IMG/VR virus record: IMGVR_UViG_3300020122_000238
Location: 124,001-188,000 of that record
DNA: 64,000 nucleotides
Reading direction: 5' to 3' (one strand)
Below the pieces are notes generated by a model. That model was not told the DNA's origin, searched no databases, and saw only the letters and a list, made by a program, of their open reading frames with translations. A program made the position numbers and the translations under genes. This document shows, one piece after another, positions 11,135 through 54,317 of this stretch (its first letter is position 1; every line of letters starts with the position of its first letter).

Positions 11135-11503
11135 ATGAAAAAGTATCTCTATCTCGTTCTCCCTCTGGCCCTCATGAGCTGTCAGATGTCAGCGAAGGAT
11201 GCAGCCACCTTGGCTGCAAACGAAACCCGAGACATCGCCGCGACCGAGCACAAGATCATCCTCGACTACTGCGTTCCTCGCTACAAGGCCGCGTCGACTC
11301 CGACGGAAATCAAGGAGGTCGACAAGCTGTGTTTGCCGGCTGAGGCCGCCTATGTGTCCACCAAGGCGGCTTGGGGCCAGGTGCTCACCCTTCTCAACGC
11401 TGCGAAGAGTGGGACGGTGTCGATCCAGGAACTCAACGATGCAGCGCGAGGGTTGGGTGAGACCCTCGCGAAGCTTCAGCATATCTCGGGGGAAATGCAA
11501 TGA
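11135..11503 (+). CDS. Lipoprotein
   Basis: MKK + hydrophobic stretch + LMSC lipobox. Confidence 0.6.
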   Translation: MKKYLYLVLPLALMSCQMSAKDAATLAANETRDIAATEHKIILDYCVPRYKAASTPTEIKEVDKLCLPAEAAYVSTKAAWGQVLTLLNAAKSGTVSIQELNDAARGLGETLAKLQHISGEMQ

Positions 11504-11679
11504 GCGTTCAGGAAGTTCTCGTTCTTCTTCAGTTTCTCGATGACCTCTTCGAGCTGGGGGGCAAGATGGTCGCTGTGGCTCAAGGGAAGCATCCCGAGCT
11601 TGTGACGACTCCTCTCCCGGATCTCGCGGAGATGGACAAGGCACGAGAAGCCGCCATCAAGCGTACATCGGACACCTGA
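11500..11679 (+). CDS. Small hypothetical protein (59 aa, MSVQEVLVLL...)
   Basis: Below the ORF-track cutoff; ATGA and TGATG overlaps with both neighbours. Confidence 0.55.
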   Translation: MSVQEVLVLLQFLDDLFELGGKMVAVAQGKHPELVTTPLPDLAEMDKAREAAIKRTSDT

Positions 11680-12644
11680 TGAGCAACGAGGGCTCACACC
11701 AAGCGGACTTGAATCCGCCTCTCGGGAAGCCTGGAGGGCCCTCATCAGTCGTGCAGCGCATCCTTCAGCGGGTGCAAAACCCCCATCTTCAGCACGACCT
11801 CGTGGACGAAGTTCAGCAGGGAGAGGACCTCTCGAATGCTGAGGCCTCGAAGGTCTACCACCTGGACATCGAGCCCGGGATTGGTCTGATCAAGAGGATC
11901 CAGATCACAGCTCATGCCCAGTACCGGATGGATCTCCGGGGGGTAACTGTCGAGGCTGTTCAGGATGTTCTCAAGCACTTCGTGACACAGCTCAACAACT
12001 GGAAAGTGTTGAAGAGCCCTGCCTACGAGCGGATGCTCTCGACGCTCGGCTCAGGGGACAAGATCGAATGGGCGAACCCGAAAACGGGGCTCAGGATCGT
12101 GTTCTCCACGATTGGGCCGGGGACGGTGAATCTCATCACCACCTTCAACAAGTGGCACAACAGCTCGACGCCTGATCCTTCTATCGGGGCACCCACAAGA
12201 GGCGATATGTACTCTGATCTCGTTCATCGGGTTGCGGATCGATTCCAGGATGACGCTGTGATCACGGCGGCCGATGACGGAGGGGTGTGGCTCCCGGACA
12301 TGCTCGGCTCGAAGGAGAACCTCGTGAAAGAGATCCTCCTCGCCGCGAAAAAGATGGCAACCGCCGACACCTTCAAGAAGGGGACATCAAGAGCATCTGC
12401 GGCGGGGTCTTGTATTTCCTCATGGAGGAAAAGGCTGGGAAGGCCGTCGCGGACAAGCTCTGGAATCTCCTCGATGCCTCCGCTGGGCTTGATGTTGGGG
12501 CTGCGGTCAACAAGCTCGTCTGGCGAATCACGCCTCACCTGGACCATGGGGACAAGGGGAAAGTCCAGGCGGCAGCCGTTGGGATCTCGCTTCTCCAGCG
12601 CTCCAAGCAGCCGACCAAGGCTCAGCGAGCCAACGCCATTTTGA
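11679..12644 (+). CDS. DUF4258/RelE-like domain protein; the part after ~12380 is probably out of frame
   Basis: ITAHAQYRMDLRGV ... LRIVF ... LITTF pattern; in-frame internal start at 12207. Confidence 0.4.
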   Translation: MSNEGSHQADLNPPLGKPGGPSSVVQRILQRVQNPHLQHDLVDEVQQGEDLSNAEASKVYHLDIEPGIGLIKRIQITAHAQYRMDLRGVTVEAVQDVLKHFVTQLNNWKVLKSPAYERMLSTLGSGDKIEWANPKTGLRIVFSTIGPGTVNLITTFNKWHNSSTPDPSIGAPTRGDMYSDLVHRVADRFQDDAVITAADDGGVWLPDMLGSKENLVKEILLAAKKMATADTFKKGTSRASAAGSCISSWRKRLGRPSRTSSGISSMPPLGLMLGLRSTSSSGESRLTWTMGTRGKSRRQPLGSRFSSAPSSRPRLSEPTPF

Positions 12645-13078
12645 GGGACGCTATCAAGTCCTCGATCGACATGGCCGGGCCTCCTGAAGAGAAGGGGAAG
12701 ACCCCGACGGCGAAGGACACCTTCCTCCAGATGGTGAAGGACCAGATCCCCTTCGCGCAGACCCTCTACGGCGAGATCAAAGATCCCGGGATTGCCGCGC
12801 TGGTTGTCTCGTATGCTCTCGACAACGCGAACTTCGGAGAGGCAGCCTACTTCGCCGAGTCGACCCTCAAGTCGATCGCCACCAAAAACCCTCCCGACGA
12901 TGTCGTTCAAGACTTTGGGGGGCAGGTCTCGGACGAGATCAATTTCTCTGTCTACGAGACGGCCGCTTTTGGTGTGGCTCTGATGCAAGAAGCCGGTCAA
13001 GCGTCCGCAGCGCGAACCCTTTTCACCGGCTTCCTTCGCATCATCGGACCCGCCATCGGCCCTAGAAGCTTGTTCTAA
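12207..13078 (+). CDS. RVxxRF-tagged helical protein with a -1 frameshift near 12380
   Basis: MYSDLVHRVADRF start; protein-like sequence continues in the 12287..13078 frame after AAGAAGGGGAC. Confidence 0.5.
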
Positions 13079-13165
13079 AGAGCCCGGCACTCCTCGACGT
13101 ACTGGAGAAGTTGGGGGCTTGTATTCGGAACAGTCTCCCACACATCTGGGGCATCTGACGATGCT

Positions 13166-13204
13166 CATGGGGGTCCTACAGAGCGGACCCCCATGAGCTC
13201 AACC
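13166..13204 (-). promoter_or_regulatory. Class B promoter-like element (GGTTGAGC variant) overlapping a 14-bp hairpin
   Basis: GGTTGAGC-N16-TGTA-GGACCCCC-ATG; inverted repeat 13163-13176/13185-13198. Confidence 0.55.
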
Positions 13205-13710
13205 TAGAAGAGCGAAAGCTGCTCGGCGATCTTCTCGACGGGCTTCGTCTCCCAGACGATCTTCCCGTCGATCTTCCGGCCGATCTTGGCCCCGTTCTTC
13301 CTCCAGTAGTCAACGAACCTCTCGATCCCGACCTTATCGAGGCCAGTCCAGGAAGGCCGCACCATCTTCATGGCAGCCAGCCCTGCATACATGCCTTCGA
13401 GGCCCATGGCCATGGGCCCAAAGATGTCAGGGCAGGCATAGACCGAGTCCTTCGGGATCCGCGTGTCGAGCATGGGGGCAGCGAAGACGGCCCGCACGAT
13501 GTTGTCGTTGTCGAGGTTGTCGATGATGTAGACGTCGTCGACAACGTTCCCCAGCTCCCTCTCGAAGTCGTCGTGGGGGATGGAGACCGTGCTCTGGCCG
13601 TACCCCTCTTGAGGGCCGGGATAGCCCGTCAAGCCGCTCAGACCTCGCGTGAGGACAAGGTAGCGATCGTCGCGGGGGGCTTTGGGCGGCGTCTTCTTCT
13701 TGGTAGCCAT
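13204..13710 (-). CDS. Hypothetical protein ending in a beta-clamp-binding motif
   Basis: 168 aa, C-terminus EQLSLF; directly follows a class B element. Confidence 0.65.
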   Translation of the reverse strand: MATKKKTPPKAPRDDRYLVLTRGLSGLTGYPGPQEGYGQSTVSIPHDDFERELGNVVDDVYIIDNLDNDNIVRAVFAAPMLDTRIPKDSVYACPDIFGPMAMGLEGMYAGLAAMKMVRPSWTGLDKVGIERFVDYWRKNGAKIGRKIDGKIVWETKPVEKIAEQLSLF

Positions 13711-13746
13711 GGGGGTCCTACAAGACGAAAGGAGGCGGGATCAACC
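13708..13746 (-). promoter_or_regulatory. Class B promoter-like element
   Basis: GGTTGATC-N16-TGTA-GGACCCCC-ATG. Confidence 0.7.
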
Positions 13747-13749
13747 CCT

Positions 13750-14215: not shown

Positions 14216-15973
14216 ATGACCGCCCTATCCCCGCAAGACACGACGGCTTACGAAACGCTGAAGAAGGTTCGAGCGTCTACAACTGTTGCGTTGAAGCCCA
14301 CCCCCATGCTCAAGGCGAGCATCGTCGGCCTTGACGGACAAGCTCAGGATTTTCGCCTACGGTATTACCAGGTTCAGGGGGTCTTCCACCTTCTGACTAT
14401 GACCAGGATGATTTTGGGGGATGGGACGGGGCTCGGAAAAACGATCCAGGTGATCGCCGCTCTTTGCTATCTGCGTCCCCGGGAGCCCAACAACCGGGTC
14501 ATCATCGTCACCCCCAAGAGCGTTCTACGTCAGTGGGGAGAAGAGATCGAACGCTTCACGACGGGGGTCAAGTGCTACGTCGTGAGTGGGTCTCTTGAAG
14601 AACGCAAAGCGGTCTACGAGAAGTGGGCCAAAGCGCCTGTGGGGGATGACGCCCCCCTCTCCGTGCTCATCGTCAACTACGCGATCATCGTTCGAGACTG
14701 GGATCAGGGTAGCCAGTCTATTCCCGGGAAGACTCCCAAGGAGAAGCCGACCGTGCTGCCCGGCTACCTGGACGGGATCACTCGGGGAATGGACCTGGTC
14801 GTCATCTACGATGAGGCGACGGCATTCAAGAACCATTCAACCAAGACGTGGCAGACGTGCCGCTATCTCTCGGATCGAGCGAAGAGGTGCTACGGGCTCA
14901 CGGCGACGCTTCTCAAGAACAACTTGATGGAGGGCTTCTCGATCTTCAAGGTGATCGTCCCTCGCCTCTTTGCGACGAAGACTGCCTTCCTGGCAGCCTT
15001 CTGCATCGTCGAGCAAAAGAGGGTGGCGGGGAACCGGAAGATCCCCATGGTCGTGGGGTACAAGAACCTGGAAGCGTTCCGGGAGAGGATTGACCCCTAC
15101 TTCCTCGGGCGTCCGAAGCACGCGGTGTCTGCGGAGCTACCTGTGCTCACCACGAAGCAGATCATCGTGGAACTGTCGGCCGCCGAGGACCAGAAGTACC
15201 AGGAAGCCCTCTCGGGGGTCCTCGAAATGGGGGACGGGTCCACCAAGGACTACGAGGAGCACAAGGCCTTCGTCTCGCTCTGCTACTGCCAACAGGTCGT
15301 CGACTCGCTCACCTTGCTCAAGTACAAGGCGGGGGACGAGCTGCTCCCCGGCGGGTATGAGCGGCTCGATGCGGAGATCGCCAGCCACACGATCGCGAAG
15401 CTCGGGAGCAAGGAGCAGGCGTTCCAGGACCTCATTCTGGACGAGCTGGATGGTGAGAAGGTCATCGTCTACACCCGCTTCGAGTCTCTTGTGGGGCGCC
15501 TACAGGCCATCCTCAAGGAGAAGGGGATCAGGAGCGGGCGCATCACGGGGAAGGACTCGGATTCGGCTCGCCGAGCCCATCAGAAAGAATTCCAGAACCT
15601 CGATTCAGACATGAAGGTCATCTTCATCACGGACGCCGGAAGCGAGGCCATCAACCTCCAGGCGGCCAGCGCCCTCGTCTTCTACGATGCCCCCTGGAGC
15701 TGGGGCAACTACGTGCAGACCCTTGGGAGGCCGATTCGCATCGGGAGCCCTCACCCCAACGTGTGTGCTTACCACATCGTGGCTGTTCGTCCCAAGGCGG
15801 CGGGGAAGAACAAAAAGACGATCGACCATCACATCCTGACCCTCCTCACGAGTAAGAAGAACCTCGTCGACAAGGTTCTCGGAGAGGCCGCCGTTGGGGC
15901 TCTCGACTTCAAGAAGGATGGCGTTGGGGCTGGGACGAAGGAGCTGCTCAAGCAAATGCGTTCCGGCGAATGA
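14216..15973 (+). CDS. SNF2-family (SF2) helicase/ATPase
   Basis: LGDGTGLGKT Walker A, YDEA Walker B, LTAT motif III, AINLQ, QTLGRPIRIG motif VI. Confidence 0.9.
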   Translation: MTALSPQDTTAYETLKKVRASTTVALKPTPMLKASIVGLDGQAQDFRLRYYQVQGVFHLLTMTRMILGDGTGLGKTIQVIAALCYLRPREPNNRVIIVTPKSVLRQWGEEIERFTTGVKCYVVSGSLEERKAVYEKWAKAPVGDDAPLSVLIVNYAIIVRDWDQGSQSIPGKTPKEKPTVLPGYLDGITRGMDLVVIYDEATAFKNHSTKTWQTCRYLSDRAKRCYGLTATLLKNNLMEGFSIFKVIVPRLFATKTAFLAAFCIVEQKRVAGNRKIPMVVGYKNLEAFRERIDPYFLGRPKHAVSAELPVLTTKQIIVELSAAEDQKYQEALSGVLEMGDGSTKDYEEHKAFVSLCYCQQVVDSLTLLKYKAGDELLPGGYERLDAEIASHTIAKLGSKEQAFQDLILDELDGEKVIVYTRFESLVGRLQAILKEKGIRSGRITGKDSDSARRAHQKEFQNLDSDMKVIFITDAGSEAINLQAASALVFYDAPWSWGNYVQTLGRPIRIGSPHPNVCAYHIVAVRPKAAGKNKKTIDHHILTLLTSKKNLVDKVLGEAAVGALDFKKDGVGAGTKELLKQMRSGE

Positions 15974-16646: not shown

Positions 16647-17540
16647 ATGCCTGACGAGAAAAAGGTCTGCTCCAAATGTGGGGGTACGGGGCGAATCGAG
16701 GTGGACGACCTTACGGTCCGCCAGTGCATCTGCGCGTTTGCCCGAGCAATGAAGGAACACCTCGGGGCAGAGATCGCTCTAGCCCCGTCCATCACGTCGA
16801 GCCCGCTGTTCGAGATGGGCGGCGTGGACAAGGACCCCAAGACCGATCTAACGAGCAAGAACCTCTTCCTCAAAGGGGCCTGGGAAGACCTTCTCCCTCA
16901 TCTGAAATGTGCTCTTGTCGGGAAAGGTCTTTTTTTCTCCTTCAAGGTCTTGACCGACGAGCGGCTCAAGATCGTTTACGTTGGGGATGAGAGCTACAAG
17001 GCTCGCTCCAAGAGCAAGCGAGATGAGTCTCCTACCTTCAACTCGCTGACGGACATCTTGGGCCCGGATGTCGACCTTGTGATCCTACGTATCGGTAAAT
17101 TGGGGTACCCCAATAAAGCCATGCCCGGGATTCTCAAGGAAGCTCTCATGCTTCGTGAAGCTGCCTCGAAAGCTACTTGGATCAACGAGACGCCAGATAG
17201 CTTTTTCGGTCCCGGTCACTTCTCCTACGATGAGAACGTGGCTGAGTACATCGAAAAGAGATTCGCGATCATGGACCTGACGAACAAGAATCGTACGAAG
17301 GAAGCTCCCCAGGGGTGCTACATTCCTTCCGAGCCTGTCGACGTGGATATGAACTCTCCGCCGCAAGCACAGATCGTCACGGAAAAGGCATGGGAATCAG
17401 CTCCGAAGCCTCGGTTCGAGAGCCGTCCTTCGAGTGCCAACTCGGATGGGGCGTTGGGGGATGGCGGCGGAGGGTACAAGCCGAAGTACAAGCCGAAGAA
17501 GTACGGTGACAACGGTGGAGGAGGGGGTCCGCTCGGATGA
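16647..17540 (+). CDS. Zn-finger protein, possible degenerate DnaC-like helicase loader
   Basis: N-terminal CSKCGGTG...CIC; directly upstream of and coupled to the helicase; no intact Walker A seen. Confidence 0.45.
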   Translation: MPDEKKVCSKCGGTGRIEVDDLTVRQCICAFARAMKEHLGAEIALAPSITSSPLFEMGGVDKDPKTDLTSKNLFLKGAWEDLLPHLKCALVGKGLFFSFKVLTDERLKIVYVGDESYKARSKSKRDESPTFNSLTDILGPDVDLVILRIGKLGYPNKAMPGILKEALMLREAASKATWINETPDSFFGPGHFSYDENVAEYIEKRFAIMDLTNKNRTKEAPQGCYIPSEPVDVDMNSPPQAQIVTEKAWESAPKPRFESRPSSANSDGALGDGGGGYKPKYKPKKYGDNGGGGGPLG

Positions 17541-19000
17541 AGCGCCTACTTCGATCCATCATCGACTTCGATGGGCAGACACCTCAAGAGCACCTGACGC
17601 AGAATCTCCAGCGGCTCATTGCTGCTCAAATTGCCTGGAATCGTCCCGACGACGAGAAAATCTTCGAGTACGTCAAGTCGTACTTTCAACAGCGGTTGGA
17701 GATCCCCGCTTCCCAGACGATCAAGGACTATTTCGTCCGCATGGACGACGTCGAGATCCAGGAGCGCATTCCGGATATCGAGGCTTCGCCGACATACGTC
17801 CGAACCAACTTCGCGGCCTTGCTCCAAACGATCCTGGAGCAACAGAACACGAACAAGACGATCGCTCTCCTCAAAGAGACGCACGAGATCGTCACCCGCG
17901 GTTTGGAGATCGTCGAGGGACGCGAGAAGATTCGGAAGCAAGGAGTTCGAGATGCCCTCGTGCATTTCACCTCGAAGTCTCACGACCTGATCATCCCGGA
18001 GTACAACGCGAGGACCTCGGGCGACATCCGGAAGGATGGTCAAGCCATCCTCGATCAGTACCAGGATGCCAAGGTCAACAAGGAGAAGACCTGGGGGAAG
18101 TTTTGCGGGCTCAACGAGATCGATAAGAATACCCACGGAATCAAGCGTGGGGAGCTGTGGGTTCACGCGGCCTTCCCCGGCGAGCTGAAGACCACGTTCT
18201 CGCTCAATTGGTGTTACAACCTCGTCACCCGATATCGGACGAACATCGTCTACTGGTCGCTGGAAATGCCCTACGAGCAGATCCGCCTCCAGTTTTACGT
18301 GCTCCACTCGGCCAACATGAAGTGGCGAGCCATGGGGTACATGCCTCTCGATTACCGGAAGGTCCGGGATGGGGAGCTAACCCCCGCGGAGGAACTCTTC
18401 TACGAGAAGGTTGTTGACGACTTCGCCAACAACCCGGACTACTGCCACTGCGAGATCATCTCCCCTGACCGGGAGGTGACCATGGATGACATTCGCCTGG
18501 AGTGCGAGCTTCTCCACAAGCAGATGGAAGTGGGGCTGATCGTCATCGACCACGGACAAGAGGTCGAGGCTCGCAAGACCAAGAGGTCGAAGGATTACGG
18601 CGTCGAGCTGAACTCTGTCGTTCGGGATGCGAAGCGATTAGCTTTGCACTTCAACCACGGGGAGCGTATCGCCGTCCTCATGCTCTTCCAGATCAACCGG
18701 CAAGGCAAGGACGAGGCGTCCAAGAACGAGGGCAAGTACAAAATGAGCGCCGTGGCCTACGCCAACCAGGTCGAGAAGTCGTCGGACGTGCTGACGACAA
18801 CCTACCTGGATGAGAACCACCGGGCTAACGGCACCACCCTGTTCTGCAACCTCAAGAACCGGGACAACCCGATCTTCGAGCCCTTCTTGGCGTCGGTCCA
18901 CTTCAGCTCGAAGCGGATCTACAACATGGACATGTACCAGGGCAAGGGGATGAGCGTCGAGGAGCACAAGCAGGTGCTCGACGAGATGTTCAACGTGTAA
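17537..19000 (+). CDS. dnaB: DnaB-like replicative helicase
   Basis: GIKRGEL..AAFPGELKT, SLEM, IVIDH, QINR and KNRD motifs. Confidence 0.85.
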   Translation: MKRLLRSIIDFDGQTPQEHLTQNLQRLIAAQIAWNRPDDEKIFEYVKSYFQQRLEIPASQTIKDYFVRMDDVEIQERIPDIEASPTYVRTNFAALLQTILEQQNTNKTIALLKETHEIVTRGLEIVEGREKIRKQGVRDALVHFTSKSHDLIIPEYNARTSGDIRKDGQAILDQYQDAKVNKEKTWGKFCGLNEIDKNTHGIKRGELWVHAAFPGELKTTFSLNWCYNLVTRYRTNIVYWSLEMPYEQIRLQFYVLHSANMKWRAMGYMPLDYRKVRDGELTPAEELFYEKVVDDFANNPDYCHCEIISPDREVTMDDIRLECELLHKQMEVGLIVIDHGQEVEARKTKRSKDYGVELNSVVRDAKRLALHFNHGERIAVLMLFQINRQGKDEASKNEGKYKMSAVAYANQVEKSSDVLTTTYLDENHRANGTTLFCNLKNRDNPIFEPFLASVHFSSKRIYNMDMYQGKGMSVEEHKQVLDEMFNV

Positions 19001-19238: not shown

Positions 19239-19492
19239 GCCTTACTGAAGAAGCAGCTCAAATCTGCATTAAAGCCGAGCTGGCTTTTCGTGCCATGCAA
19301 AATATATTCCCAGGTGTGTATGGCTCAAATGCAACCCTGTTGATATGTTCATTTCTCCTTCTTGAAGACACACATTTAAAAGAGATGTGTGTCCCTGGGT
19401 ACCCGTTGTTCACTGAGTTGTGGTGTGTGTCTACAACTAGCTGGGACCATCTTGATGGGAATCTTTTGAAGGATGACAACGATGGCATTTGA
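19235..19492 (+). CDS. Small protein with TSWDHL-acidic tail
   Basis: GTG start overlapping upstream TGA; paralogous to 19002..19238. Confidence 0.55.
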   Translation: MSLTEEAAQICIKAELAFRAMQNIFPGVYGSNATLLICSFLLLEDTHLKEMCVPGYPLFTELWCVSTTSWDHLDGNLLKDDNDGI

Positions 19493-20108
19493 ACCCCAAG
19501 ACCACGAGCGGAAAGAAGTCTTTCGCCGTTGGATCCAGGCTCGCATCGAGGCGATTCACCGCCAGGTGACGGCCTATGACGTGCTCCGCCGGAACGGGGT
19601 GAGCCTTCGGAATGGGGGTGCTCGCGAGGAACAGTTCGCCTGTCCCTTCCACGGGCGAGACAACAAGCCCTCAGTCCGGTATCACCCGGAGTCGAATCGC
19701 GGCCCGTCTCACGCATGGTGCTTCGTGTGCCAGGAACGCTGGGACTGCATCGCCCTCTACAAGAGGTTCGAAGGGTTTGAGGGCAAGTTCACCCAGCTCC
19801 TCGCGATGATCGAGCGGGACAACGGGCTCACCGCGCCTGAAGGCCCCCCGCCAGAGCAGCATGGGGAAGAAGAAGAGGCTCTGGCTCAAGATGCAGAGGT
19901 ACATGGCCTTCTCGGAATCTGTGAACGCCGGCTTCTCGCCGCCAAGGGGCTCTTTGACATGAAGGCCTACCTGGTCCTCGGGACGATCCTCGATCGACTC
20001 TATGGATCTCTTGACGATCGCCGAGTGCTCCCGCTCAAAGCCAAGGAGACCATCCGGCTTGTGCTTGACAAGATCGGACAGAGGGAGCGGGCTTGTCCCG
20101 ACGTCTGA
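19473..20108 (+). CDS. Stand-alone primase-type CHC2 zinc-binding domain protein
   Basis: CPFHGRDNKPS...WCFVC; no TOPRIM domain. Confidence 0.75.
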   Translation: MTTMAFEPQDHERKEVFRRWIQARIEAIHRQVTAYDVLRRNGVSLRNGGAREEQFACPFHGRDNKPSVRYHPESNRGPSHAWCFVCQERWDCIALYKRFEGFEGKFTQLLAMIERDNGLTAPEGPPPEQHGEEEEALAQDAEVHGLLGICERRLLAAKGLFDMKAYLVLGTILDRLYGSLDDRRVLPLKAKETIRLVLDKIGQRERACPDV

Positions 20109-20518
20109 AGCTCCGGACCAACGAGCTGGGCTTCTTGGAGCTGTTTCTCATCTACATCTACGGCGAGGCCTGGGAAGATGAATGGCTCCAGCTTCAAGGC
20201 CAGCCGATCACGGCCAACATCCCACAAATCTCGAAGGCGACGATGGACCATGCCCTTCGAGGTTGGACCCGCCCCTTCATCGACCAGCTAGGCCCAGCGC
20301 CAGCTCTACTTCTACGCAAGCTCCCTGAGACACATTCTCAGTGTGTCCAGCGGAAGCGGTGTAGCCTCTACATCCCCCATTACTGCGTCCCCTCGGCCAA
20401 GAAGATGCCTTGGTGTTTTCAGCCCGAGGGGACGGATGATTTTACGGGGCCTCTCGCGGCGGAAGTCATCCGGCTCTGGCGTGAAGGTGTGTACATCGTG
20501 TTGGTTCAGGAGGCGTGA
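20093..20518 (+). CDS. Hypothetical Cys-rich protein
   Basis: 141 aa filling the gap between the ZBD and polymerase genes. Confidence 0.55.
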   Translation: MSRRLKLRTNELGFLELFLIYIYGEAWEDEWLQLQGQPITANIPQISKATMDHALRGWTRPFIDQLGPAPALLLRKLPETHSQCVQRKRCSLYIPHYCVPSAKKMPWCFQPEGTDDFTGPLAAEVIRLWREGVYIVLVQEA

Positions 20519-23415
20519 TGGCTGACGAGTTCGATGACGACGATTTTGATTTCTTGAACTCCCCAGCTCCTCTCGGACGCAAGGAGCTGGCCCTCACCGC
20601 GATGGCAAAACAGGCGATGAATCGCCCCGTCGAGTCTTTCGAGGATGAGGGTGGGCTCGACGACTTCATGTCGAACACCGGGATGGTCCGGGAACGCGAT
20701 GTCCCGGACCCGACGAAGCCTTGGATGCGTTTCCACGAGTTCGTGCTCGTGAAGACTATCGAGGAGGTTCGAGCAATCGTCGATGCGGCCATCGCTGCCA
20801 AGAACTGCTCGCTCGACCTGGAAACCCAGGGCCTCGACAACCGCATCTTCTACGATGCGGAGGGCAAACCTCAGACGGTTCACAAGATCGTGGGGTTCTG
20901 TATCTCGTACAACTCCAAGACGGGCTACTACATCCCTGTCCGCCACAGGACCGGCGAGGGGATGCCGGATCTGAACGTCAAGCCGAGCGAGGTCGAGGCG
21001 GAAATCCGTCGCCTATGTCTCGCCTCGCAGCCGACCCCCAAGGGCTCTCCGAAGGACCTCCTTTCCTTCAAGGAGTTCGAGGAGGGGCCTCAGCTCGTCA
21101 TCAACTTCTGGAACGCCAAGTTCGATCAGGAGTTCCTCTTCCCCATTACGGGGATCGACTGGTGGCACCCTGACTCCTTCGAGGATGGTTGCCTGGCTGC
21201 CTTTACGGTCTACTCCGATGATTGGCTCGGTCTCAAGGAGAATGCGAAGGAGAAGCTCCGCGTCTCTGAAGAGGTTACGGGATCGGATGGGAGGCGCTTG
21301 AAGGTCGAATACGCCTACGAGATGATCGAGCTGAAGGAGCTGTTTCTCAAGGGCCGTCCGATCCAGTTCGATGCTCTCTCGCCGGATGAGCCGGGCGTGA
21401 TCAAATACGCCTGTTCAGACGCCATCTGCACGAATCTCCTCTGCCTACGAGACGACCTCGTGAAGCTGTGCCGGGACAAGTACGGCTTCACCTACCGTCT
21501 GGAGAAGCAAGTTTCCCAAGTGGCTCGGGTCATGGAACGCAATCGTGCGATGGTGAACCGAAACAAGGTCAAGCTCCTCTTGGACAAGCACACCAAGAAG
21601 CGCGACGAGCTTCTCGTGCTCATCGATGCTCTCGCCAAGAGCAAGGGCTTCCACGGTTTTGATCCCGCGAGCACCAAGCAGCTCGGGGAGTTCCTCTTCG
21701 GGGAGAAGGGTCTGGATATCTCCCCGAAGCCCGAGAAGAACGAGAAGTCACAGCAGTACAAGACCGACGGAGAGACGCTCGAAAACCTCACGAAGGACAT
21801 GGGCCCCAATGCCCCCATGATCCTCCAGTGGATGGTCAAGCTCCGCGAAGAGGAGAAGCTCCTCGGGACCTATCTTCACAACCTCTACGAGAACTACGAC
21901 AAGCACGCGATGCCTCTGTCGGAGATGCGTTTCGACTGGAAGCAGACGGGAGCTGCCACGGGGCGCTTCTCAGCTCCCGGCCGGAAGGATCACATCGACC
22001 ACGGCTTCAGCGGAGTCCCTATTCACGGGATTCCCTCGACGTCCGATCTCCGGACGTGCTTCGAGGCCCGTCCGGGCTACGCGATGTGCAAGTGCGATTA
22101 CGCAGGGCAAGAGCTGCGGATCGTTACGAACCTCTCGAACGAAAGCGTCTGGATCAAGGAGTTCAAGGAAGGGTCGGGCGACCTTCACAGCATCACCGCC
22201 AGGGCCTTCTTCAACAAGGCGGACATTACCAAGGACGAGCGGAAGATGGGCAAGATTGCCAACTTCGCTCTCGTCTACGGTGGTGGCCCGGCTGCCATCA
22301 TGCGGGCAACGGGCTGTGACAAGGTCGAGGGGCAACGCCGGAAGGCGGCCTTCGATAAGGCTGTCCCGACCTTCGCGAAGTGGGTCAAGCAGCAACATAC
22401 GAAAGTCAAGAGGGACAAGGGTGTCTGGACGGCCTTCGGTCGTTGGATCGCCATCCCCGATGCCAACGTGATGGAAGGGGAGATGCTCAACGGTCGGATC
22501 TTGTCGTCGCAAGACGCGAACATGATCCGAGCTGCCTGTGAGCGACACGCGACGAACTACCCGATTCAGGGGAGCGGCGCGGACATTATGAAGATCGCTA
22601 TGGTTCTTCTTCACAAGGAATTCCACCGCCGGGGCTGGCTCCGAAATGGGGGTGACGATTCGGTTCGGATGCTCCTCACGGTTCACGACGAGCTTGTCTT
22701 CGAGATTCGCTACGATCGTGTGGCGGAAGCCATCCCCCTCATCGTCGAGCAGATGGAGATGCCGACGAAGATGGCAAGGCCTCCCTACTCGCCTGTGTGG
22801 CAGGTCCCTCTTGTTGTCGAGCCCTTGATCGGCTTCAACTGGGGCGCGGGCTACGGGATCGTTCCCTTCAAGGAGGGGTATGTCCTCAAGGAGTTCGAAG
22901 TGCTCCTCGGCGGATTCGTCTACTCTCTCACCCGCGTGGTCGAGAAGGAAGGCGAGATTCTGGAGGAGGAAGTCATCGTCAAGACGGAGGAGAAGAGTGG
23001 CAAGAAGGTCTTCACCATCCGGTTGAAGATCGACCCCCCGTGGCTCAAGGGTGGATCCAGCTCACCTCCGCCGCCTCCTTCAACTCCGCCGTCCTCGGAT
23101 AGCCGTGAGAGGATTGCGCCCCCCTCTTCACCGATGGCCCCCCTGTCTCAACAGACGTTGAAGCAGGATGGGCCGCCGCCCGAGGTGGTCACGATTCGAC
23201 TGCGAGAACTGTCCCCGTCCACGCTTCGGCAAGTCCGTGGAGTGTGCGCGCAGTACATCGATCCCGACAATGGATCGCTTCTCCGGCTGATTGACCCGAT
23301 GTCGGGTAAGACGATCATTGACCCCAAGCTCGGAGTCAAGATCAACCCCGAGATGGTTGCGGGGGCTCTCAAGGAGATGCATCTTTCCGACGGACAGTAT
23401 CTTCCCAGTTCGTAA
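20515..23415 (+). CDS. polA: Family A DNA polymerase with 3'-5' exonuclease
   Basis: Exo DLETQG, NAKFD, YACSD; pol TGRFS, DYAGQELR, KIANFALVYG, IQGSGADIMK, VHDE. Confidence 0.93.
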   Translation: MMADEFDDDDFDFLNSPAPLGRKELALTAMAKQAMNRPVESFEDEGGLDDFMSNTGMVRERDVPDPTKPWMRFHEFVLVKTIEEVRAIVDAAIAAKNCSLDLETQGLDNRIFYDAEGKPQTVHKIVGFCISYNSKTGYYIPVRHRTGEGMPDLNVKPSEVEAEIRRLCLASQPTPKGSPKDLLSFKEFEEGPQLVINFWNAKFDQEFLFPITGIDWWHPDSFEDGCLAAFTVYSDDWLGLKENAKEKLRVSEEVTGSDGRRLKVEYAYEMIELKELFLKGRPIQFDALSPDEPGVIKYACSDAICTNLLCLRDDLVKLCRDKYGFTYRLEKQVSQVARVMERNRAMVNRNKVKLLLDKHTKKRDELLVLIDALAKSKGFHGFDPASTKQLGEFLFGEKGLDISPKPEKNEKSQQYKTDGETLENLTKDMGPNAPMILQWMVKLREEEKLLGTYLHNLYENYDKHAMPLSEMRFDWKQTGAATGRFSAPGRKDHIDHGFSGVPIHGIPSTSDLRTCFEARPGYAMCKCDYAGQELRIVTNLSNESVWIKEFKEGSGDLHSITARAFFNKADITKDERKMGKIANFALVYGGGPAAIMRATGCDKVEGQRRKAAFDKAVPTFAKWVKQQHTKVKRDKGVWTAFGRWIAIPDANVMEGEMLNGRILSSQDANMIRAACERHATNYPIQGSGADIMKIAMVLLHKEFHRRGWLRNGGDDSVRMLLTVHDELVFEIRYDRVAEAIPLIVEQMEMPTKMARPPYSPVWQVPLVVEPLIGFNWGAGYGIVPFKEGYVLKEFEVLLGGFVYSLTRVVEKEGEILEEEVIVKTEEKSGKKVFTIRLKIDPPWLKGGSSSPPPPPSTPPSSDSRERIAPPSSPMAPLSQQTLKQDGPPPEVVTIRLRELSPSTLRQVRGVCAQYIDPDNGSLLRLIDPMSGKTIIDPKLGVKINPEMVAGALKEMHLSDGQYLPSS

Positions 23416-24735: not shown

Positions 24736-26310
24736 ATGTCATCCCACGAAGATCTCGTCTTCCACCTTCGAAGCCTGAGCCGCGTGATCTACTACGTCAC
24801 CGACGAGGAAGATCGGTTTCTCGTGAAGCTGCGGGACACCCTCAAGAAGCACGCTGATCGGTGCTGGGTGTTCAGCGCAACCTTCGGGCTCGTTACGCTC
24901 AAGAACCTGATCTCGGACTGGACCTCGAAGCAGCACGCGATCAATCGTGAGCAGCTCTCGATCCACGACGCCTTGGAGAGCATCTACAAGGACGACCCCA
25001 AGGACGAGCGCAATTTCTACGTTTTCACGGACCCGGAGCGCTGGCTCGCCGATGCCCACGTCAATCGGCGCCTCCTGAACATCGTCCACCAGGTCCACCA
25101 GGACATCAGAACCCTCAAGATCCTGATCTTCGTCGGGACCCGCAAGGCGATGCCGGAATCGCTTGCCCCCTACATGGAGGTCATCCAGGACACCGGGCTG
25201 ACGCCGGAAGAGATCATGTCGACGGTCGAGGCAGCCTGCAAGCACCTCCCCGGAGTCGAGCCCCCGCCCAACTGCGCGCAGCTCTTCGCTGGGATGAACA
25301 GCTACCAGATCGACATGGCCGTGGCGAAGTCTATCGTGGCCACCAAGAAGGACGAGACGTCTCCGAAGCGGATCGACCCGGCGCACATCACGAAATACCG
25401 TCGGAACCAGCTCAAGAAGACGGACCTGCTCCAGCTCCTCGACGTCGAGGGGGTGACCTTCGATCAGCTCGGCGGCAACCACCGCTTCAAGGAGTGGGCC
25501 ATTGAGACGAAGGATAGCTGGAGTGAGGAAGGGCGGGCCTTCGGTCTCAAGCCCCCGAAGGGTGTCCTCCTCGTGGGTGTCTGGGGCTGCGGTAAGTCGC
25601 TGGCGTCGAAGGCGATGGCTCAGGCGTGGGGTATGCCGGTCGTCCAGCTCGAAATGGGCAAGCTCCGTTCGGCCAACGTTGGCCAGTCCGAAGCCAACGT
25701 CTATAAGGCCATTCGGCACATCGAGTCGATCGCTCCCTGTGTGGTGTGGATCGATGAGGCCGAGAAGAGCCTCGGCGGCGGGGCGTCCTCGGCGGCCTCC
25801 GATGCAGGAACGACGAGCCGCACGATCGGTATCCTCTCGACATGGCTCCAGGAGACCACGTCTCCGATCTGCCTCGCCCTCACGGCGAACAGCCTGAAAA
25901 CGCTTCCGATCGAGTTCGTCAACCGGATGGACGAGCGGTTCTTCTTCGACATCCCGAGCGAGGAAGAGCGGATCGAGATCCTTCGTATTCATCTCCGCAA
26001 GGCGGGGCAGAACCCGAGTGATTTCCAGCTCGCCGCTCTGTCCGATGCCTGCAAGGGCATGGTCGGTCGCGAGATCGAGCAGACGGTCGGAGCAGGTATG
26101 CGGAAGAGCTTCAAGGTACGCAGCAAGAAGCTCGATGAGACCATCCTCCTGGACATCGCGGGGAAGAAGCCCCGGATCCTGAAGACGATGGTCGACGAGA
26201 TCCGCGAGCTGGTCGAGTGGGTCGGCTTCGACACGGACGCTAACGAAGGGATCAAGGCTCGCCTGGCTTCGGCCCCGAGCAAGGGAAGCAGCTTCAAGCT
26301 CGTCGAGTGA
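24736..26310 (+). CDS. Ycf46-like AAA+ ATPase
   Basis: PKGVLLVGVWGCGKS, WIDEAEK, TAN, RMDERFFFDIP; degenerate N-terminal AAA. Confidence 0.85.
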   Translation: MSSHEDLVFHLRSLSRVIYYVTDEEDRFLVKLRDTLKKHADRCWVFSATFGLVTLKNLISDWTSKQHAINREQLSIHDALESIYKDDPKDERNFYVFTDPERWLADAHVNRRLLNIVHQVHQDIRTLKILIFVGTRKAMPESLAPYMEVIQDTGLTPEEIMSTVEAACKHLPGVEPPPNCAQLFAGMNSYQIDMAVAKSIVATKKDETSPKRIDPAHITKYRRNQLKKTDLLQLLDVEGVTFDQLGGNHRFKEWAIETKDSWSEEGRAFGLKPPKGVLLVGVWGCGKSLASKAMAQAWGMPVVQLEMGKLRSANVGQSEANVYKAIRHIESIAPCVVWIDEAEKSLGGGASSAASDAGTTSRTIGILSTWLQETTSPICLALTANSLKTLPIEFVNRMDERFFFDIPSEEERIEILRIHLRKAGQNPSDFQLAALSDACKGMVGREIEQTVGAGMRKSFKVRSKKLDETILLDIAGKKPRILKTMVDEIRELVEWVGFDTDANEGIKARLASAPSKGSSFKLVE

Positions 26311-28688: not shown

Positions 28689-28899
28689 GCTGCGAGATCG
28701 ATCTGGCGAGGTGTGTATTGATTCGAAGCTTGTGAGCTTCCTCTACGATCTCATGCGAGATCATCTTCCGCCGGGGGTTGTGGAGACCCTCGTTCAAAAT
28801 GCGTCGAATCCAGACGTGACCTACACAAATGGTTGGTTGGCATCTTATGCCGAAGACCTCGCCAAGAGACTCGGCGACACCCCCAAAAGGATCAAATGA
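28681..28899 (+). CDS. Hypothetical protein
   Basis: MTELRDRSG..., coupled to thyA. Confidence 0.5.
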   Translation: MTELRDRSGEVCIDSKLVSFLYDLMRDHLPPGVVETLVQNASNPDVTYTNGWLASYAEDLAKRLGDTPKRIK

Positions 28900-30014
28900 A
28901 GCAATATCAAGACGCAGTCCGACACGTCCTCGCCAACGGAACTCGCAAGGAGAATCGGACTGGGGTCGATACCCTATCGACTTTCGGATACTACTACGAA
29001 GTGGACCTCGCCGAGGGTTTCCCGCTCCTCACCACCAAGAACGTGAGCTGGAAGAACATCGTCGTTGAGCTTTTGTGGTTCCTCTCGGGTCAAACCGATA
29101 TCGCGATCCTCAAGCGCCACGGTTGCAAGTTCTGGGATGCTTGGGCGGACCCTGATACGGGCAAGGTCCCGAGCGCCTATGGCAACTTCTGGCGCAAGTT
29201 TCCGGTTCATCGTCAAGATGATCCGAAATCCCCCGCAGTCCAATCCAGGGGATCAGCCATTTCGCCTGACTTCAACGACCAGATCGCCTGGGTGCTCGCT
29301 GAGATGCGCAGGAACCCCATGAGTCGGCGGATGGTCGTCTCGGCTTGGGCTCCCGGAAACGCACAGACGAGCAAGCTCCCGCCCTGCCACTGCCTCTACG
29401 TGTTCAACGTGCAGAACGCGGACCCGACGCCGAGGTACGTGCATTACGGACACAATAGGGGAGAGGACCCTGTGTGCGGCAACTACAATGACGGCCGACG
29501 GGTTCTGCCGCACGGGGAAGGGATGAAGTATCGGGAGGCATGGTGCCCCGACTGCCAGGTCCTTCTCAACGGAGCGCGAGGGGGCGATGTCTTCAAGAAC
29601 CCTCCTGTGGGGGACGACCCGCGTCGCCTCTGCCTTCATTTGACGCAGAGATCGCTGGATGTAATGCTTGGCGCACCGTACAACCTCGCCTCGTACGCGC
29701 TGCTCATCGAGCTGTTCAGCCGGTTCACGGGAATCAAGCCTGGGATTTTCGGGCATTCCGTGGTCGACATGCACATCTACTGTGCCAAGCCCGATGGGTC
29801 TATGGCCGAATACGACCACACCCCTGGTGCTCGCGAGCAACTTACGAGAGAGCCCCGTCTTCTTCCTCGCCTCATCATCGATGACAGTATCAAGGACCTC
29901 AGCGATATCGAACGCCTGATGGATCCATCGGTCACTACAGAAGAAATCATGGGTCTCTTCCGCTTGGAAGGGTACAATCCACACCCGGCCATCAACTTCA
30001 AAGTTGCAGTCTGA
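28896..30014 (+). CDS. thyA: Thymidylate synthase with a Cys/His-rich insertion
   Basis: NRTG, FPLLTTK, ELLWF, SRRMVVSAW, LPPCH, QRSLD, DMHIY; ends FKVAV. Confidence 0.93.
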   Translation: MKQYQDAVRHVLANGTRKENRTGVDTLSTFGYYYEVDLAEGFPLLTTKNVSWKNIVVELLWFLSGQTDIAILKRHGCKFWDAWADPDTGKVPSAYGNFWRKFPVHRQDDPKSPAVQSRGSAISPDFNDQIAWVLAEMRRNPMSRRMVVSAWAPGNAQTSKLPPCHCLYVFNVQNADPTPRYVHYGHNRGEDPVCGNYNDGRRVLPHGEGMKYREAWCPDCQVLLNGARGGDVFKNPPVGDDPRRLCLHLTQRSLDVMLGAPYNLASYALLIELFSRFTGIKPGIFGHSVVDMHIYCAKPDGSMAEYDHTPGAREQLTREPRLLPRLIIDDSIKDLSDIERLMDPSVTTEEIMGLFRLEGYNPHPAINFKVAV

Positions 30015-30032
30015 TGTTCACTGTGCTACGTC

Positions 30033-30911
30033 TTGGACGTGGTGACTGAAGAGTTCCTCCGAAAGAAGTACCTTGGCGATCTGCTCTCCCTTCGGCAGAT
30101 CGCTTCTCTTTGTGGTGTGGCTGTCGGCACGATCCGCTACCACATGAAGCGCTTTGGGATTCCTCGCCGAACGAAATCCGAGGCCCTCTCTGGGGACAAG
30201 AACCCCATGCATGGGAAGACGAAGTCAGATGCGACCCGGCGGAAAACCTCAGAGACCCTTCAAGTCACAAATAAGGATCCTGATGTAAAGGCCCGCCGAA
30301 GCGCCTCAACTTCGGGGATCCGAAATCCCATGTATGGGAAAACACACACAGAAGAGGTAAAGGAAGCCGCACACACAAGGCTGAATTCTATACGACACAC
30401 CCCAGACTTTGTGTCAGCTCAAAAAGCTGCAATGCAACGACTGGAAGTCCGCCAAGCTCTCTCGGAGAGCGCCTCCCAAAGAGTGGGGGAGAAGAACCCC
30501 TTCTTTGGGCATGAGCATAGCTCCGAGACCAAGCAGAAAATAGCTCAAGCCAACCGAGGTCGTTTTCTAGGGGAGAAGGGTTCCAACTGGAAGGGCGGGA
30601 AGACTCGACTCTCAGCTCTGATTCGGAACTCCGAACCGGCAATCCGATGGCGAAAGGATGTCTTCAAGAGGGACGCCTATACTTGCCAGAGGTGTGGTCA
30701 AATTGGGGGTCAACTACAGGCGGATCACATTCAACCTCTTGCGGGGCTCCTCGACGAGCACTGCATCAAGACCCTCGAAGATGCGTTCAACTGTCCCACC
30801 CTCTGGGATTTGACCAACGGTCGGACGCTCTGCATTTCGTGTCACAAAAAGACGCCTTCCTACGCGGGCAACTATCAGAAGAATTATCCTGCGTTCAAGG
30901 TCGCGGTGTAG
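30033..30911 (+). mobile_element. Free-standing HNH homing endonuclease with NUMOD3-like repeats
   Basis: NPMHGK/NPMYGKTH/NPFFGHEHS repeats, CQRC, DHI, NGRTLCISCH; ends FKVAV like thyA. Confidence 0.85.
30905..30910 (+). promoter_or_regulatory. Class A element GGTGTA overlapping a stop codon
   Basis: 10 nt before ATG 30921. Confidence 0.6.
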
Positions 30912-53152: not shown

Positions 53153-53188
53153 GGGGGTCCTACGAGGCCAAGCTCGACACGATCAACC
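53150..53188 (-). promoter_or_regulatory. Class B promoter-like element within a 19-bp inverted repeat
   Basis: GGTTGATC-N16-CGTA-GGACCCCC-ATG; arms 53130-53148/53165-53183. Confidence 0.7.
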
Positions 53189-53247
53189 GGGTATCAGGTC
53201 GGGGGATGAACATTCGGGACTCCTCTGTGGGGTGTGGCAAAGCCCGG

Positions 53248-53912: not shown

Positions 53913-53948
53913 GGAGGTCCTACAGGAGGACGGGGCATACGATCAACC
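53910..53948 (-). promoter_or_regulatory. Class B promoter-like element
   Basis: GGTTGATC-N16-TGTA-GGACCTCC-ATG. Confidence 0.7.
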
Positions 53949-54317
53949 CTTCGGCTTCTTCAGGATCAGGGCGAGCTGTGCCGCGAAAGAGACCTGTTCC
54001 CTGGTCGGGCCCGGCTCACCCTTCGCGATCTTCTTCAGCTCCTTCTGGACAGCCTTGACAGCTCGCTTTGCGGGGGCTTCCTTCGACCAGCCGACCAGGC
54101 GATCCTCAACGGATTGCCCTGCGAAATCCTTCGGGTTGGCCAGGAAACAGGCCTGGAAGAGCCTGCAATGAAGGCTTTCATCCATGAAAGCTGCCCGAAG
54201 AGGCTCACTCTCGCCGTCTTCCGAGATGAGGTAGACACGGAAAGCCTTGGGGTCATCCCACTCCGCGAACACACCGTTGATTTTGCTAGCGTCTTCTTTG
54301 ATCTTGGAGGTAGACAT
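53943..54317 (-). CDS. Hypothetical protein (MSTSKIKED...)
   Basis: Start chosen at the ATG after the class B element. Confidence 0.6.
   Translation of the reverse strand: MSTSKIKEDASKINGVFAEWDDPKAFRVYLISEDGESEPLRAAFMDESLHCRLFQACFLANPKDFAGQSVEDRLVGWSKEAPAKRAVKAVQKELKKIAKGEPGPTREQVSFAAQLALILKKPKG

Follow-up and report, generated by a model that had tools for sequence, protein, structure and literature searches.

What is an exact clamp-binding peptide doing at the end of a small phage protein that belongs to no named family? The question is raised by P0001, a 168 aa protein of a jumbo phage which has been recorded from metagenomes alone. The window analysed here is a stretch of 64,000 nucleotides (bases 124001-188000) from a 275.3 kb IMG/VR virus record; the record has a GC content of 58%, and its completeness is 58% by CheckV estimate. 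In bacteria, the sliding clamp serves as a hub and is also a target of antibiotics. To our knowledge, few phage proteins engage it: Twort Gp168, an inhibitor which acts at the DNA channel, and MuC, a user which acts through clamp-binding motifs (CBMs). The P0001 locus points to an unnamed and fairly widespread phage and mobile-element family which would have acquired canonical clamp-docking tails repeatedly.

Reading frame, motif and promoter-like element

The coding sequence of P0001 lies on the minus strand (13204..13710, stop codon included). It starts with ATG and has a GC3 of 86% in frame. The protein ends in ...EKIAEQLSLF, as the initial annotation had read it, and is followed by TAG. 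Codons Q164-L-S-L-F168 (13207..13221, minus strand) give an exact match to the beta-clamp-binding consensus QL[SD]LF at the extreme C-terminus; residues 164-168 fit the pentapeptide pattern QL[SD]LF (or Qxx[LM]xF). This pattern had been annotated as the consensus DnaN-binding peptide, and rightly so: peptides that bind bacterial DnaN in its hydrophobic cleft have this accepted consensus (PMC12867686; PMC9690074).

QL[SD]LF occurs exactly once among the 3166 six-frame ORFs of at least 50 aa in the 275.3 kb record, and that one occurrence is the C-terminus of P0001. From the phage's own amino-acid composition, 4e-4 occurrences are expected at a C-terminus and 0.08 anywhere in the proteome. A chance origin of the peptide is unlikely. 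The last 21 codons have a GC3 of 95% in the QLSLF frame versus 25-50% in the other two frames; the motif therefore lies in an evolved, long-term coding frame. A soil-metagenome contig from another study spans 13199-13332 with two substitutions and no gaps relative to the window, and the intact QLSLF frame is thus reproduced. Elsewhere in the phage ORFs there is a sole other candidate for a terminal CBM-like peptide. This is a 91 aa ORF beyond the window (G000:46694-46969, minus strand) which has a coding-like GC3 and ends in ...VDDGPEQLELLE, a loose CBM-like peptide (QLELL) one residue from the C-terminus.

The gene had also been placed under a "class B promoter", which is borne out as a sequence feature. 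The element is bipartite, (G)GTTGATC-N17-19-(C)TGTAGGAC-N4-5-ATG, and belongs to the promoter-like class GGTTGATC/TGTAGGAC. At P0001 it reads GGGTTGATC-N18-TGTAGGACCCCC and lies directly against the ATG (13711..13747, minus strand). There are 19 copies in the genome (G000) versus about 1 expected (0-3 in shuffles); they are always found 4-5 nt ahead of an ATG, mostly in front of small ORFs without known function. The second box has seven near-matches in the window, a number which none of 100 shuffles attains. Both boxes are identical in the sister phage described below, where the spacer differs. A second copy, GTTGAGC ... TGTAGGACCCCC, comes right after the P0001 stop codon (13169..13203, minus strand). 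It serves the next small minus-strand ORF and includes the inverted repeat GGGGGTCC/GGACCCCC. Further copies in the window are found at 53153-53190 and 53913-53950, both on the minus strand. Since the element abuts start codons, leaderless or near-leaderless mRNAs are implied. The initial annotation had called the protein a putative early one; none of the RNA runs contains the locus.

Architecture and family of the core

P0001 has a Lys/Pro-rich basic N-terminal tail (residues 1-16, MATKKKTPPKAPRDDR; 13663..13710, minus strand), which is missing in most family members. This is followed by a conserved alpha/beta core (residues 17-153; 13252..13662, minus strand), delimited by conservation among 143 relatives and by an AlphaFold2 model. 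A linker (E154-E163, ETKPVEKIAE; 13222..13251, minus strand) separates the invariant Trp153, with which the core ends, from the motif. The AlphaFold2 model, built with the family alignment, is of alpha/beta type (pLDDT 91.4, pTM 0.82). Residues 17-155 are well defined in it, the first 16 residues less well, and the linker is also modelled with low confidence. Mean pLDDT is 83 for residues 151-160 and 57 for the last eight (161-168), versus more than 90 for the core, and QLSLF comes after the final beta-hairpin. In the predicted structure, QLSLF sits on an exposed, flexible C-terminal tail and is not packed into the fold.

Structure searches gave no credible neighbour for the core with Foldseek against the PDB (best E 0.58), with VIA-align against 48,161 chains (best Z 3.1) or in the ESM Atlas by shape and by features (TM <= 0.34). 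BFVD holds one real structural match, A0A6J5RQT3, an uncharacterised protein of an uncultured Caudovirales phage. It shares fold and family with the P0001 core (Foldseek E 1.6e-10, TM 0.59/0.67, 22% identity); it is unannotated and, at 148 aa, too short for the linker and tail found in P0001. An RNase H-like/ASKHA fold was considered for the core and rejected. Weak matches of this kind recur, but they are non-significant (Foldseek E>=0.58, VIA Z<=3.1) and extend over no more than about 60-80 residues of the N-terminal beta-beta-beta-alpha-beta part.

An exhaustive phmmer search places P0001 in a family of 143 representatives at E<=1e-3, most of which are 140-180 aa long. The family core ends in ...WR..GA[RK][IV]G.....G.I.W[ED], and its near-invariant residues are D64, P79, D125, W136, G140, A141, G144 and W153. 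Four acidic residues (D64, D82, D125 and E154) are conserved, which suggests that the core holds an enzymatic or metal-binding site. P0001 itself deviates from family-typical residues (SGY to SIP, EG to DD and DKR to DNL), so its core activity may be altered. Profiles from Pfam, PHROGs, NCBIfam and PADLOC match neither P0001 nor any of 88 aligned relatives. Together with the lack of a structural neighbour, this agrees with the annotated absence of a recognisable enzyme fold. The ten longer fusion members of the family have no added known domain, and a PDB profile search found no match (best E 0.55). Deposited phage genomes were also searched: tblastn of P0001 against 50,697 of them gave no match at E<=0.01, tblastn of members P0005 and P0037 gave no match, and neither did megablast of the P0001 locus.

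Some family members lie among small phage genes that are unannotated and arranged in arrays; others have conjugative-element-like surroundings, next to RadC, DpdA, DUF2786 and relaxase/coupling-protein-like genes. A shared upstream partner gene was considered and discarded; several members are preceded by ORFs of ~126-131 aa, but these fail to align (11-30% identity in forced alignment).

Tails in the sister phage and across the family

A word search returned a single close homologue of P0001. This protein, P0002, has 166 aa and is 77% identical to P0001. It is carried by a sister phage of 350-363 kb from at least five samples, and all seven loci compared are identical here. The annotated tail of P0002 is ...AALALLG, without QLSLF. 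At the DNA level, 58 of the last 59 nt are identical between the window and the sister phage, including CAG-CTC-TCG-CTC-TTC-TAG, and the single difference is synonymous in the window's frame. The two sequences differ by a 2-nt indel at codons K150-I151 (13258..13263, minus strand; GGGAAGATCGTC in one versus GGGCTTCGTC in the other), which leaves the QLSLF DNA of the sister phage out of frame at all seven loci. The frameshift is recent and derived, because the GC3 of the tail DNA in the sister phage still bears the mark of the QLSLF frame. The tail is dispensable there, since the sister phage lost the motif yet persists in at least five samples.

With a background of about 90% DNA identity for the two phages, 58/59 is only mildly notable; the idea that the tail DNA is a conserved nucleic-acid element was rejected accordingly. 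Between window and sister phage, the core has an overall dN/dS of 0.50; the value rises from about 0.33 in codons 1-92 to about 0.65 in codons 93-146, the C-terminal half being the fast-evolving one.

Tails vary widely over the family. Roughly half of the members end within about 8 residues after the invariant Trp. Strict Q-x-x-[LIM]-[FLI] ends, a pattern looser than QL[SD]LF, are found in 8/142 representatives versus about 0.07 expected: QLSLF, QGRLF, QLDLI, QGELF, QQDLF, QIELL, QPILF and QGRLL. The background of this pattern is ~1 in 3500 unrelated ORFs, which makes the enrichment in the family about 200-fold, and eight strict ends were attained in 0/2000 tail shuffles. Five more members have looser tails (QLSLLGESK, QASLGF, QLPLYE, QLEFAL and AADLPLD). 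Strict and loose tails together thus account for 8-13 of the 142 representatives (6-9% of the family). All have the same layout, in which the core Trp is followed by a short, often Pro-rich linker and the motif stands at the very end. Gln, the hallmark CBM residue, is fixed at position -5 in the enriched strict ends.

The eight strict-tail members are scattered on a core-only tree, with 6-7 state changes, at least three of which are forced by well-supported branches; the counts are approximate, as the tree is poorly resolved (144 columns, 138 rows). This scatter indicates that the tail has been gained or lost repeatedly. One supported sister pair, P0051 and P0071, has a Q..LF end in both proteins despite deep divergence. 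No close relatives of the tail-bearing members turned up in a word search that used all of them as seeds; each is a database singleton. Conservation in homologues had been named in the initial annotation as a check on its reading, and the outcome is divided: the motif is enriched in distant homologues, but no more than 8-13/142 have a tail of this kind, and in the only close homologue a 2-nt frameshift has removed it. Taken together, the comparisons indicate that P0001 represents a new, unnamed family without a recognisable fold, in which a known short linear motif appears to be used in a modular and labile way.

Other tails also recur. A C-terminal extension of the form EDG...IP....R[YW] is found in about 24 representatives, which cluster on the tree. 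A third type, limited to a few members, is Cys-rich and zinc-ribbon-like (C.CW..C..C...YYVD...GPDDHCP.C). Members with EDG or Cys-rich tails include P0004, P0006, P0009, P0020 and P0021, as well as P0062, P0075, P0120 and P0122. The family may therefore use interchangeable C-terminal modules.

Proposed clamp docking and its alternatives

The P0001 gene belongs to an islet of three minus-strand genes, which adjoins the left end of a plus-strand replication module. The module encodes an SNF2 helicase (14216-15973), a DnaB-like helicase (17537-19000), a protein with a DnaG-type (primase) zinc ribbon (19473-20108), a 966 aa family-A polymerase (PolA; 20515-23415) and, just 3' of the polymerase gene, a 524 aa AAA ATPase (24736-26310). 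Neither the 275.3 kb record nor the 350 kb sister record, both incomplete, contains a detectable member of the DnaN, gp45 or PCNA families; the target of the P0001 tail would hence be the clamp of the host. A PCNA_N match in the C-terminal part of the AAA ATPase of both phages is sub-threshold (E 0.07) and was judged to be noise.

The QLSLF tail is probably functional. An exact motif, a flexible tail and the recurrence of similar tails in the family are best read as a functional clamp-docking peptide. The reading favoured here, to which we give a probability of roughly 45%, is that P0001 has a modular tail for clamp docking, by which an independent phage effector core is tethered to host DnaN. 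P0001 would then be a modular accessory protein, made up of a basic N-terminal tail, an alpha/beta core of ~140 residues and a flexible QLSLF tail of ~15 residues. The tail would most likely insert into the hydrophobic cleft of host DnaN, in the manner of the C-terminal motifs of bacterial polymerases and MuC. Insertion would tether the core to clamp-loaded DNA, that is, to replication forks and primer ends; abundant P0001 would also compete with host clamp clients. DnaN binding, tethering and competition are all things that we infer. The core would have an activity of its own; it must act independently of the clamp, since the tail is missing in more than 90% of the family and has been lost by the sister phage. 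The clamp tail may be considered an optional targeting module which is gained or lost repeatedly, with a recent loss in the sister phage. A tail that is optional and labile favours a clamp-tethered effector over a dedicated clamp inhibitor.

Bacterial clamp clients offer one point of comparison. Those with a C-terminal motif of the QL[SD]LF type include Pol II, Pol IV, Hda, MutS and others (Dalrymple consensus, cited in PMC9690074 and PMC11139829). Like P0001, they have the exact consensus at the extreme C-terminus, on a flexible tail behind a folded domain. P0001 differs from them in that it is encoded by a phage, its core is unrelated to the polymerase, repair or Hda families and is without a Pfam family or known fold, and the motif is present in a minority of its homologues.

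MuC of phage Mu is a second one. Its near-consensus CBMs (QHDLF, QPDLF) enlist the host clamp productively for late transcription, and its overexpression is toxic in a CBM-dependent manner (PMC12867686). MuC/Mor and P0001 are both small phage proteins with CBMs, and MuC does engage the host clamp. However, P0001 has one C-terminal motif whereas MuC has two, the folds differ, and the CBM is sporadic in the P0001 family but family-wide in Mor/MuC. P0001 is thus not placed with the Mor/MuC-type activators: it matches no Pfam family at E<=1, its alpha/beta fold is unmatched and its motif is sporadic. Nor, given this lack of Pfam matches, is a Mor/MuC-type domain detected in it. It should be noted that MuC is a productive clamp user and is nevertheless toxic through its CBMs; toxicity alone therefore cannot separate an effector from an inhibitor. 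Gp168 of Staphylococcus phage Twort (Liu 2021, cited in PMC11139829) is likewise a small phage protein which targets host DnaN. It does so by occupying the DNA channel, not the canonical cleft, and by blocking clamp loading. Membership of P0001 in a Twort Gp168/G1 Gp240-type inhibitor group was considered and rejected, as tblastn against the 50,697 phage genomes gave no match at E<=0.01.

The initial annotation took P0001 for an inhibitor or hijacker of the host clamp. Its clamp-directed part is supported indirectly by the exact motif, the flexible tail and the ~200-fold enrichment in the family; dedicated inhibition fits less well than tethering. The main task of a dedicated inhibitor would be to fill the DnaN cleft and so stop replication of the host, with the core acting as bulk or as a second contact. 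One monovalent CBM competes poorly against multivalent clients, which counts against this role. Also unfavourable are the more than 90% of the family that have no such tail, so that the conserved core must have another function, and the loss of the tail in the sister phage. The canonical, high-affinity motif would nonetheless suit an inhibitor, as would a promoter-like element of its own, of a kind common to many small accessory ORFs. The phage has its own PolA/DnaB replisome and no clamp was found, so it may not need host DnaN; and CBM-dependent toxicity is known for MuC (PMC12867686). Precedent, however, counts against it. The one phage clamp inhibitor with a characterised structure, Twort Gp168, acts at the DNA channel instead of the cleft (PMC11139829), so that a phage inhibitor working through a CBM only would be without precedent. 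Dedicated inhibition is considered improbable.

A role as replisome adaptor is more doubtful again. Here the core would bind one of the phage replication proteins (PolA, the DnaB-like helicase or the primase) and the tail would connect it with the host clamp, for processivity or for coupling to phage DNA synthesis. In keeping with an adaptor are the position of the gene beside the replication module, the failure to find a phage clamp, and the lack of a terminal CBM-like peptide in any other phage ORF apart from the loose QLELL of the 91 aa ORF. However, the gene runs on the opposite strand to the module, within a three-gene islet that is variable and has its own promoter class; the sister phage has the same replication genes and lost the tail; and relatives occur in small accessory-gene arrays or conjugative-element-like contexts, not beside polymerases. 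A tail that has nothing to do with DnaN, being either a chance match or a hydrophobic peptide for self-association or for another partner, is unlikely but has to be taken seriously. Complex prediction of P0001 with E. coli DnaN (DPO3B_ECOLI) gave scores of 0.48, 0.51 and 0.48 versus 0.49 for one unrelated control; it is not specific and is counted neither for nor against binding. In favour of a tail unrelated to DnaN are the absence of the motif from most relatives, its loss in the sister phage and the use of a pattern looser than QL[SD]LF when the family was counted. Against this stand the 4e-4 expected for an exact C-terminal motif by chance, the enrichment of about 200-fold with Gln fixed at position -5, and the position of the motif on a flexible linker outside the fold.

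Clamp tethering, the preferred reading, can be extended. The core could represent a new fold and a new class of phage and mobile-element effectors with interchangeable C-terminal "address" tails (CBM; EDG...IP....R[YW]; Cys-rich), in which P0001 would be an enzyme brought by the host clamp to forks or primer ends, acting there on DNA or on the replisome. This extension is speculative and, as a whole, rather unlikely. If true, it would amount to a clamp-guided takeover or anti-defence mechanism so far undescribed for phages. Confirmation of binding would be of use in several ways. The window phage with its tail and the sister phage without it would form a natural paired experiment, and there would be a handle on the function of an orphan family. 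It would also suggest that host-clamp targeting is commoner in environmental phages than one would judge from the few cultured examples.

The surroundings of the gene differ in several respects between the two phages. The minus-strand islet is evolving fast in both. The 96 aa gene downstream of P0002 in the sister phage (L002:8532-8822) is largely deleted or replaced at 13079-13168 of the window (minus strand), where the gap is ~170-190 nt. The remnant starts with MSIVRCPRCVGDC... and continues through the neighbouring gene as a 314 aa antisense shadow ORF (GC3 0.62). That plus-strand neighbour, 11679-13078, corresponds to a single gene of 435/459 aa in the sister phage, whereas the window has it divided between the overlapping frames 11679-12644 and 12287-13078 (tblastn pieces, frames 1 and 3). 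The split could be due to a frameshift, a pseudogene or an assembly error.

Three other genes of the window may be mentioned. In the family-A polymerase, the Pfam polymerase match ends at residue 777 and is followed by about 190 unannotated C-terminal residues. At 28833-30911 (plus strand), the thymidylate synthase is unusually long, with 393 aa, and its Pfam match falls into two stretches, which suggests an insertion within it; a NUMOD3/HNH homing-endonuclease-like gene directly follows. A 122 aa ORF at 11135-11503 (plus strand) starts with MKKYLYLVLPLALMSCQ, a lipoprotein-type signal peptide with a lipobox Cys, which hints at a diderm or lipoprotein-processing host.
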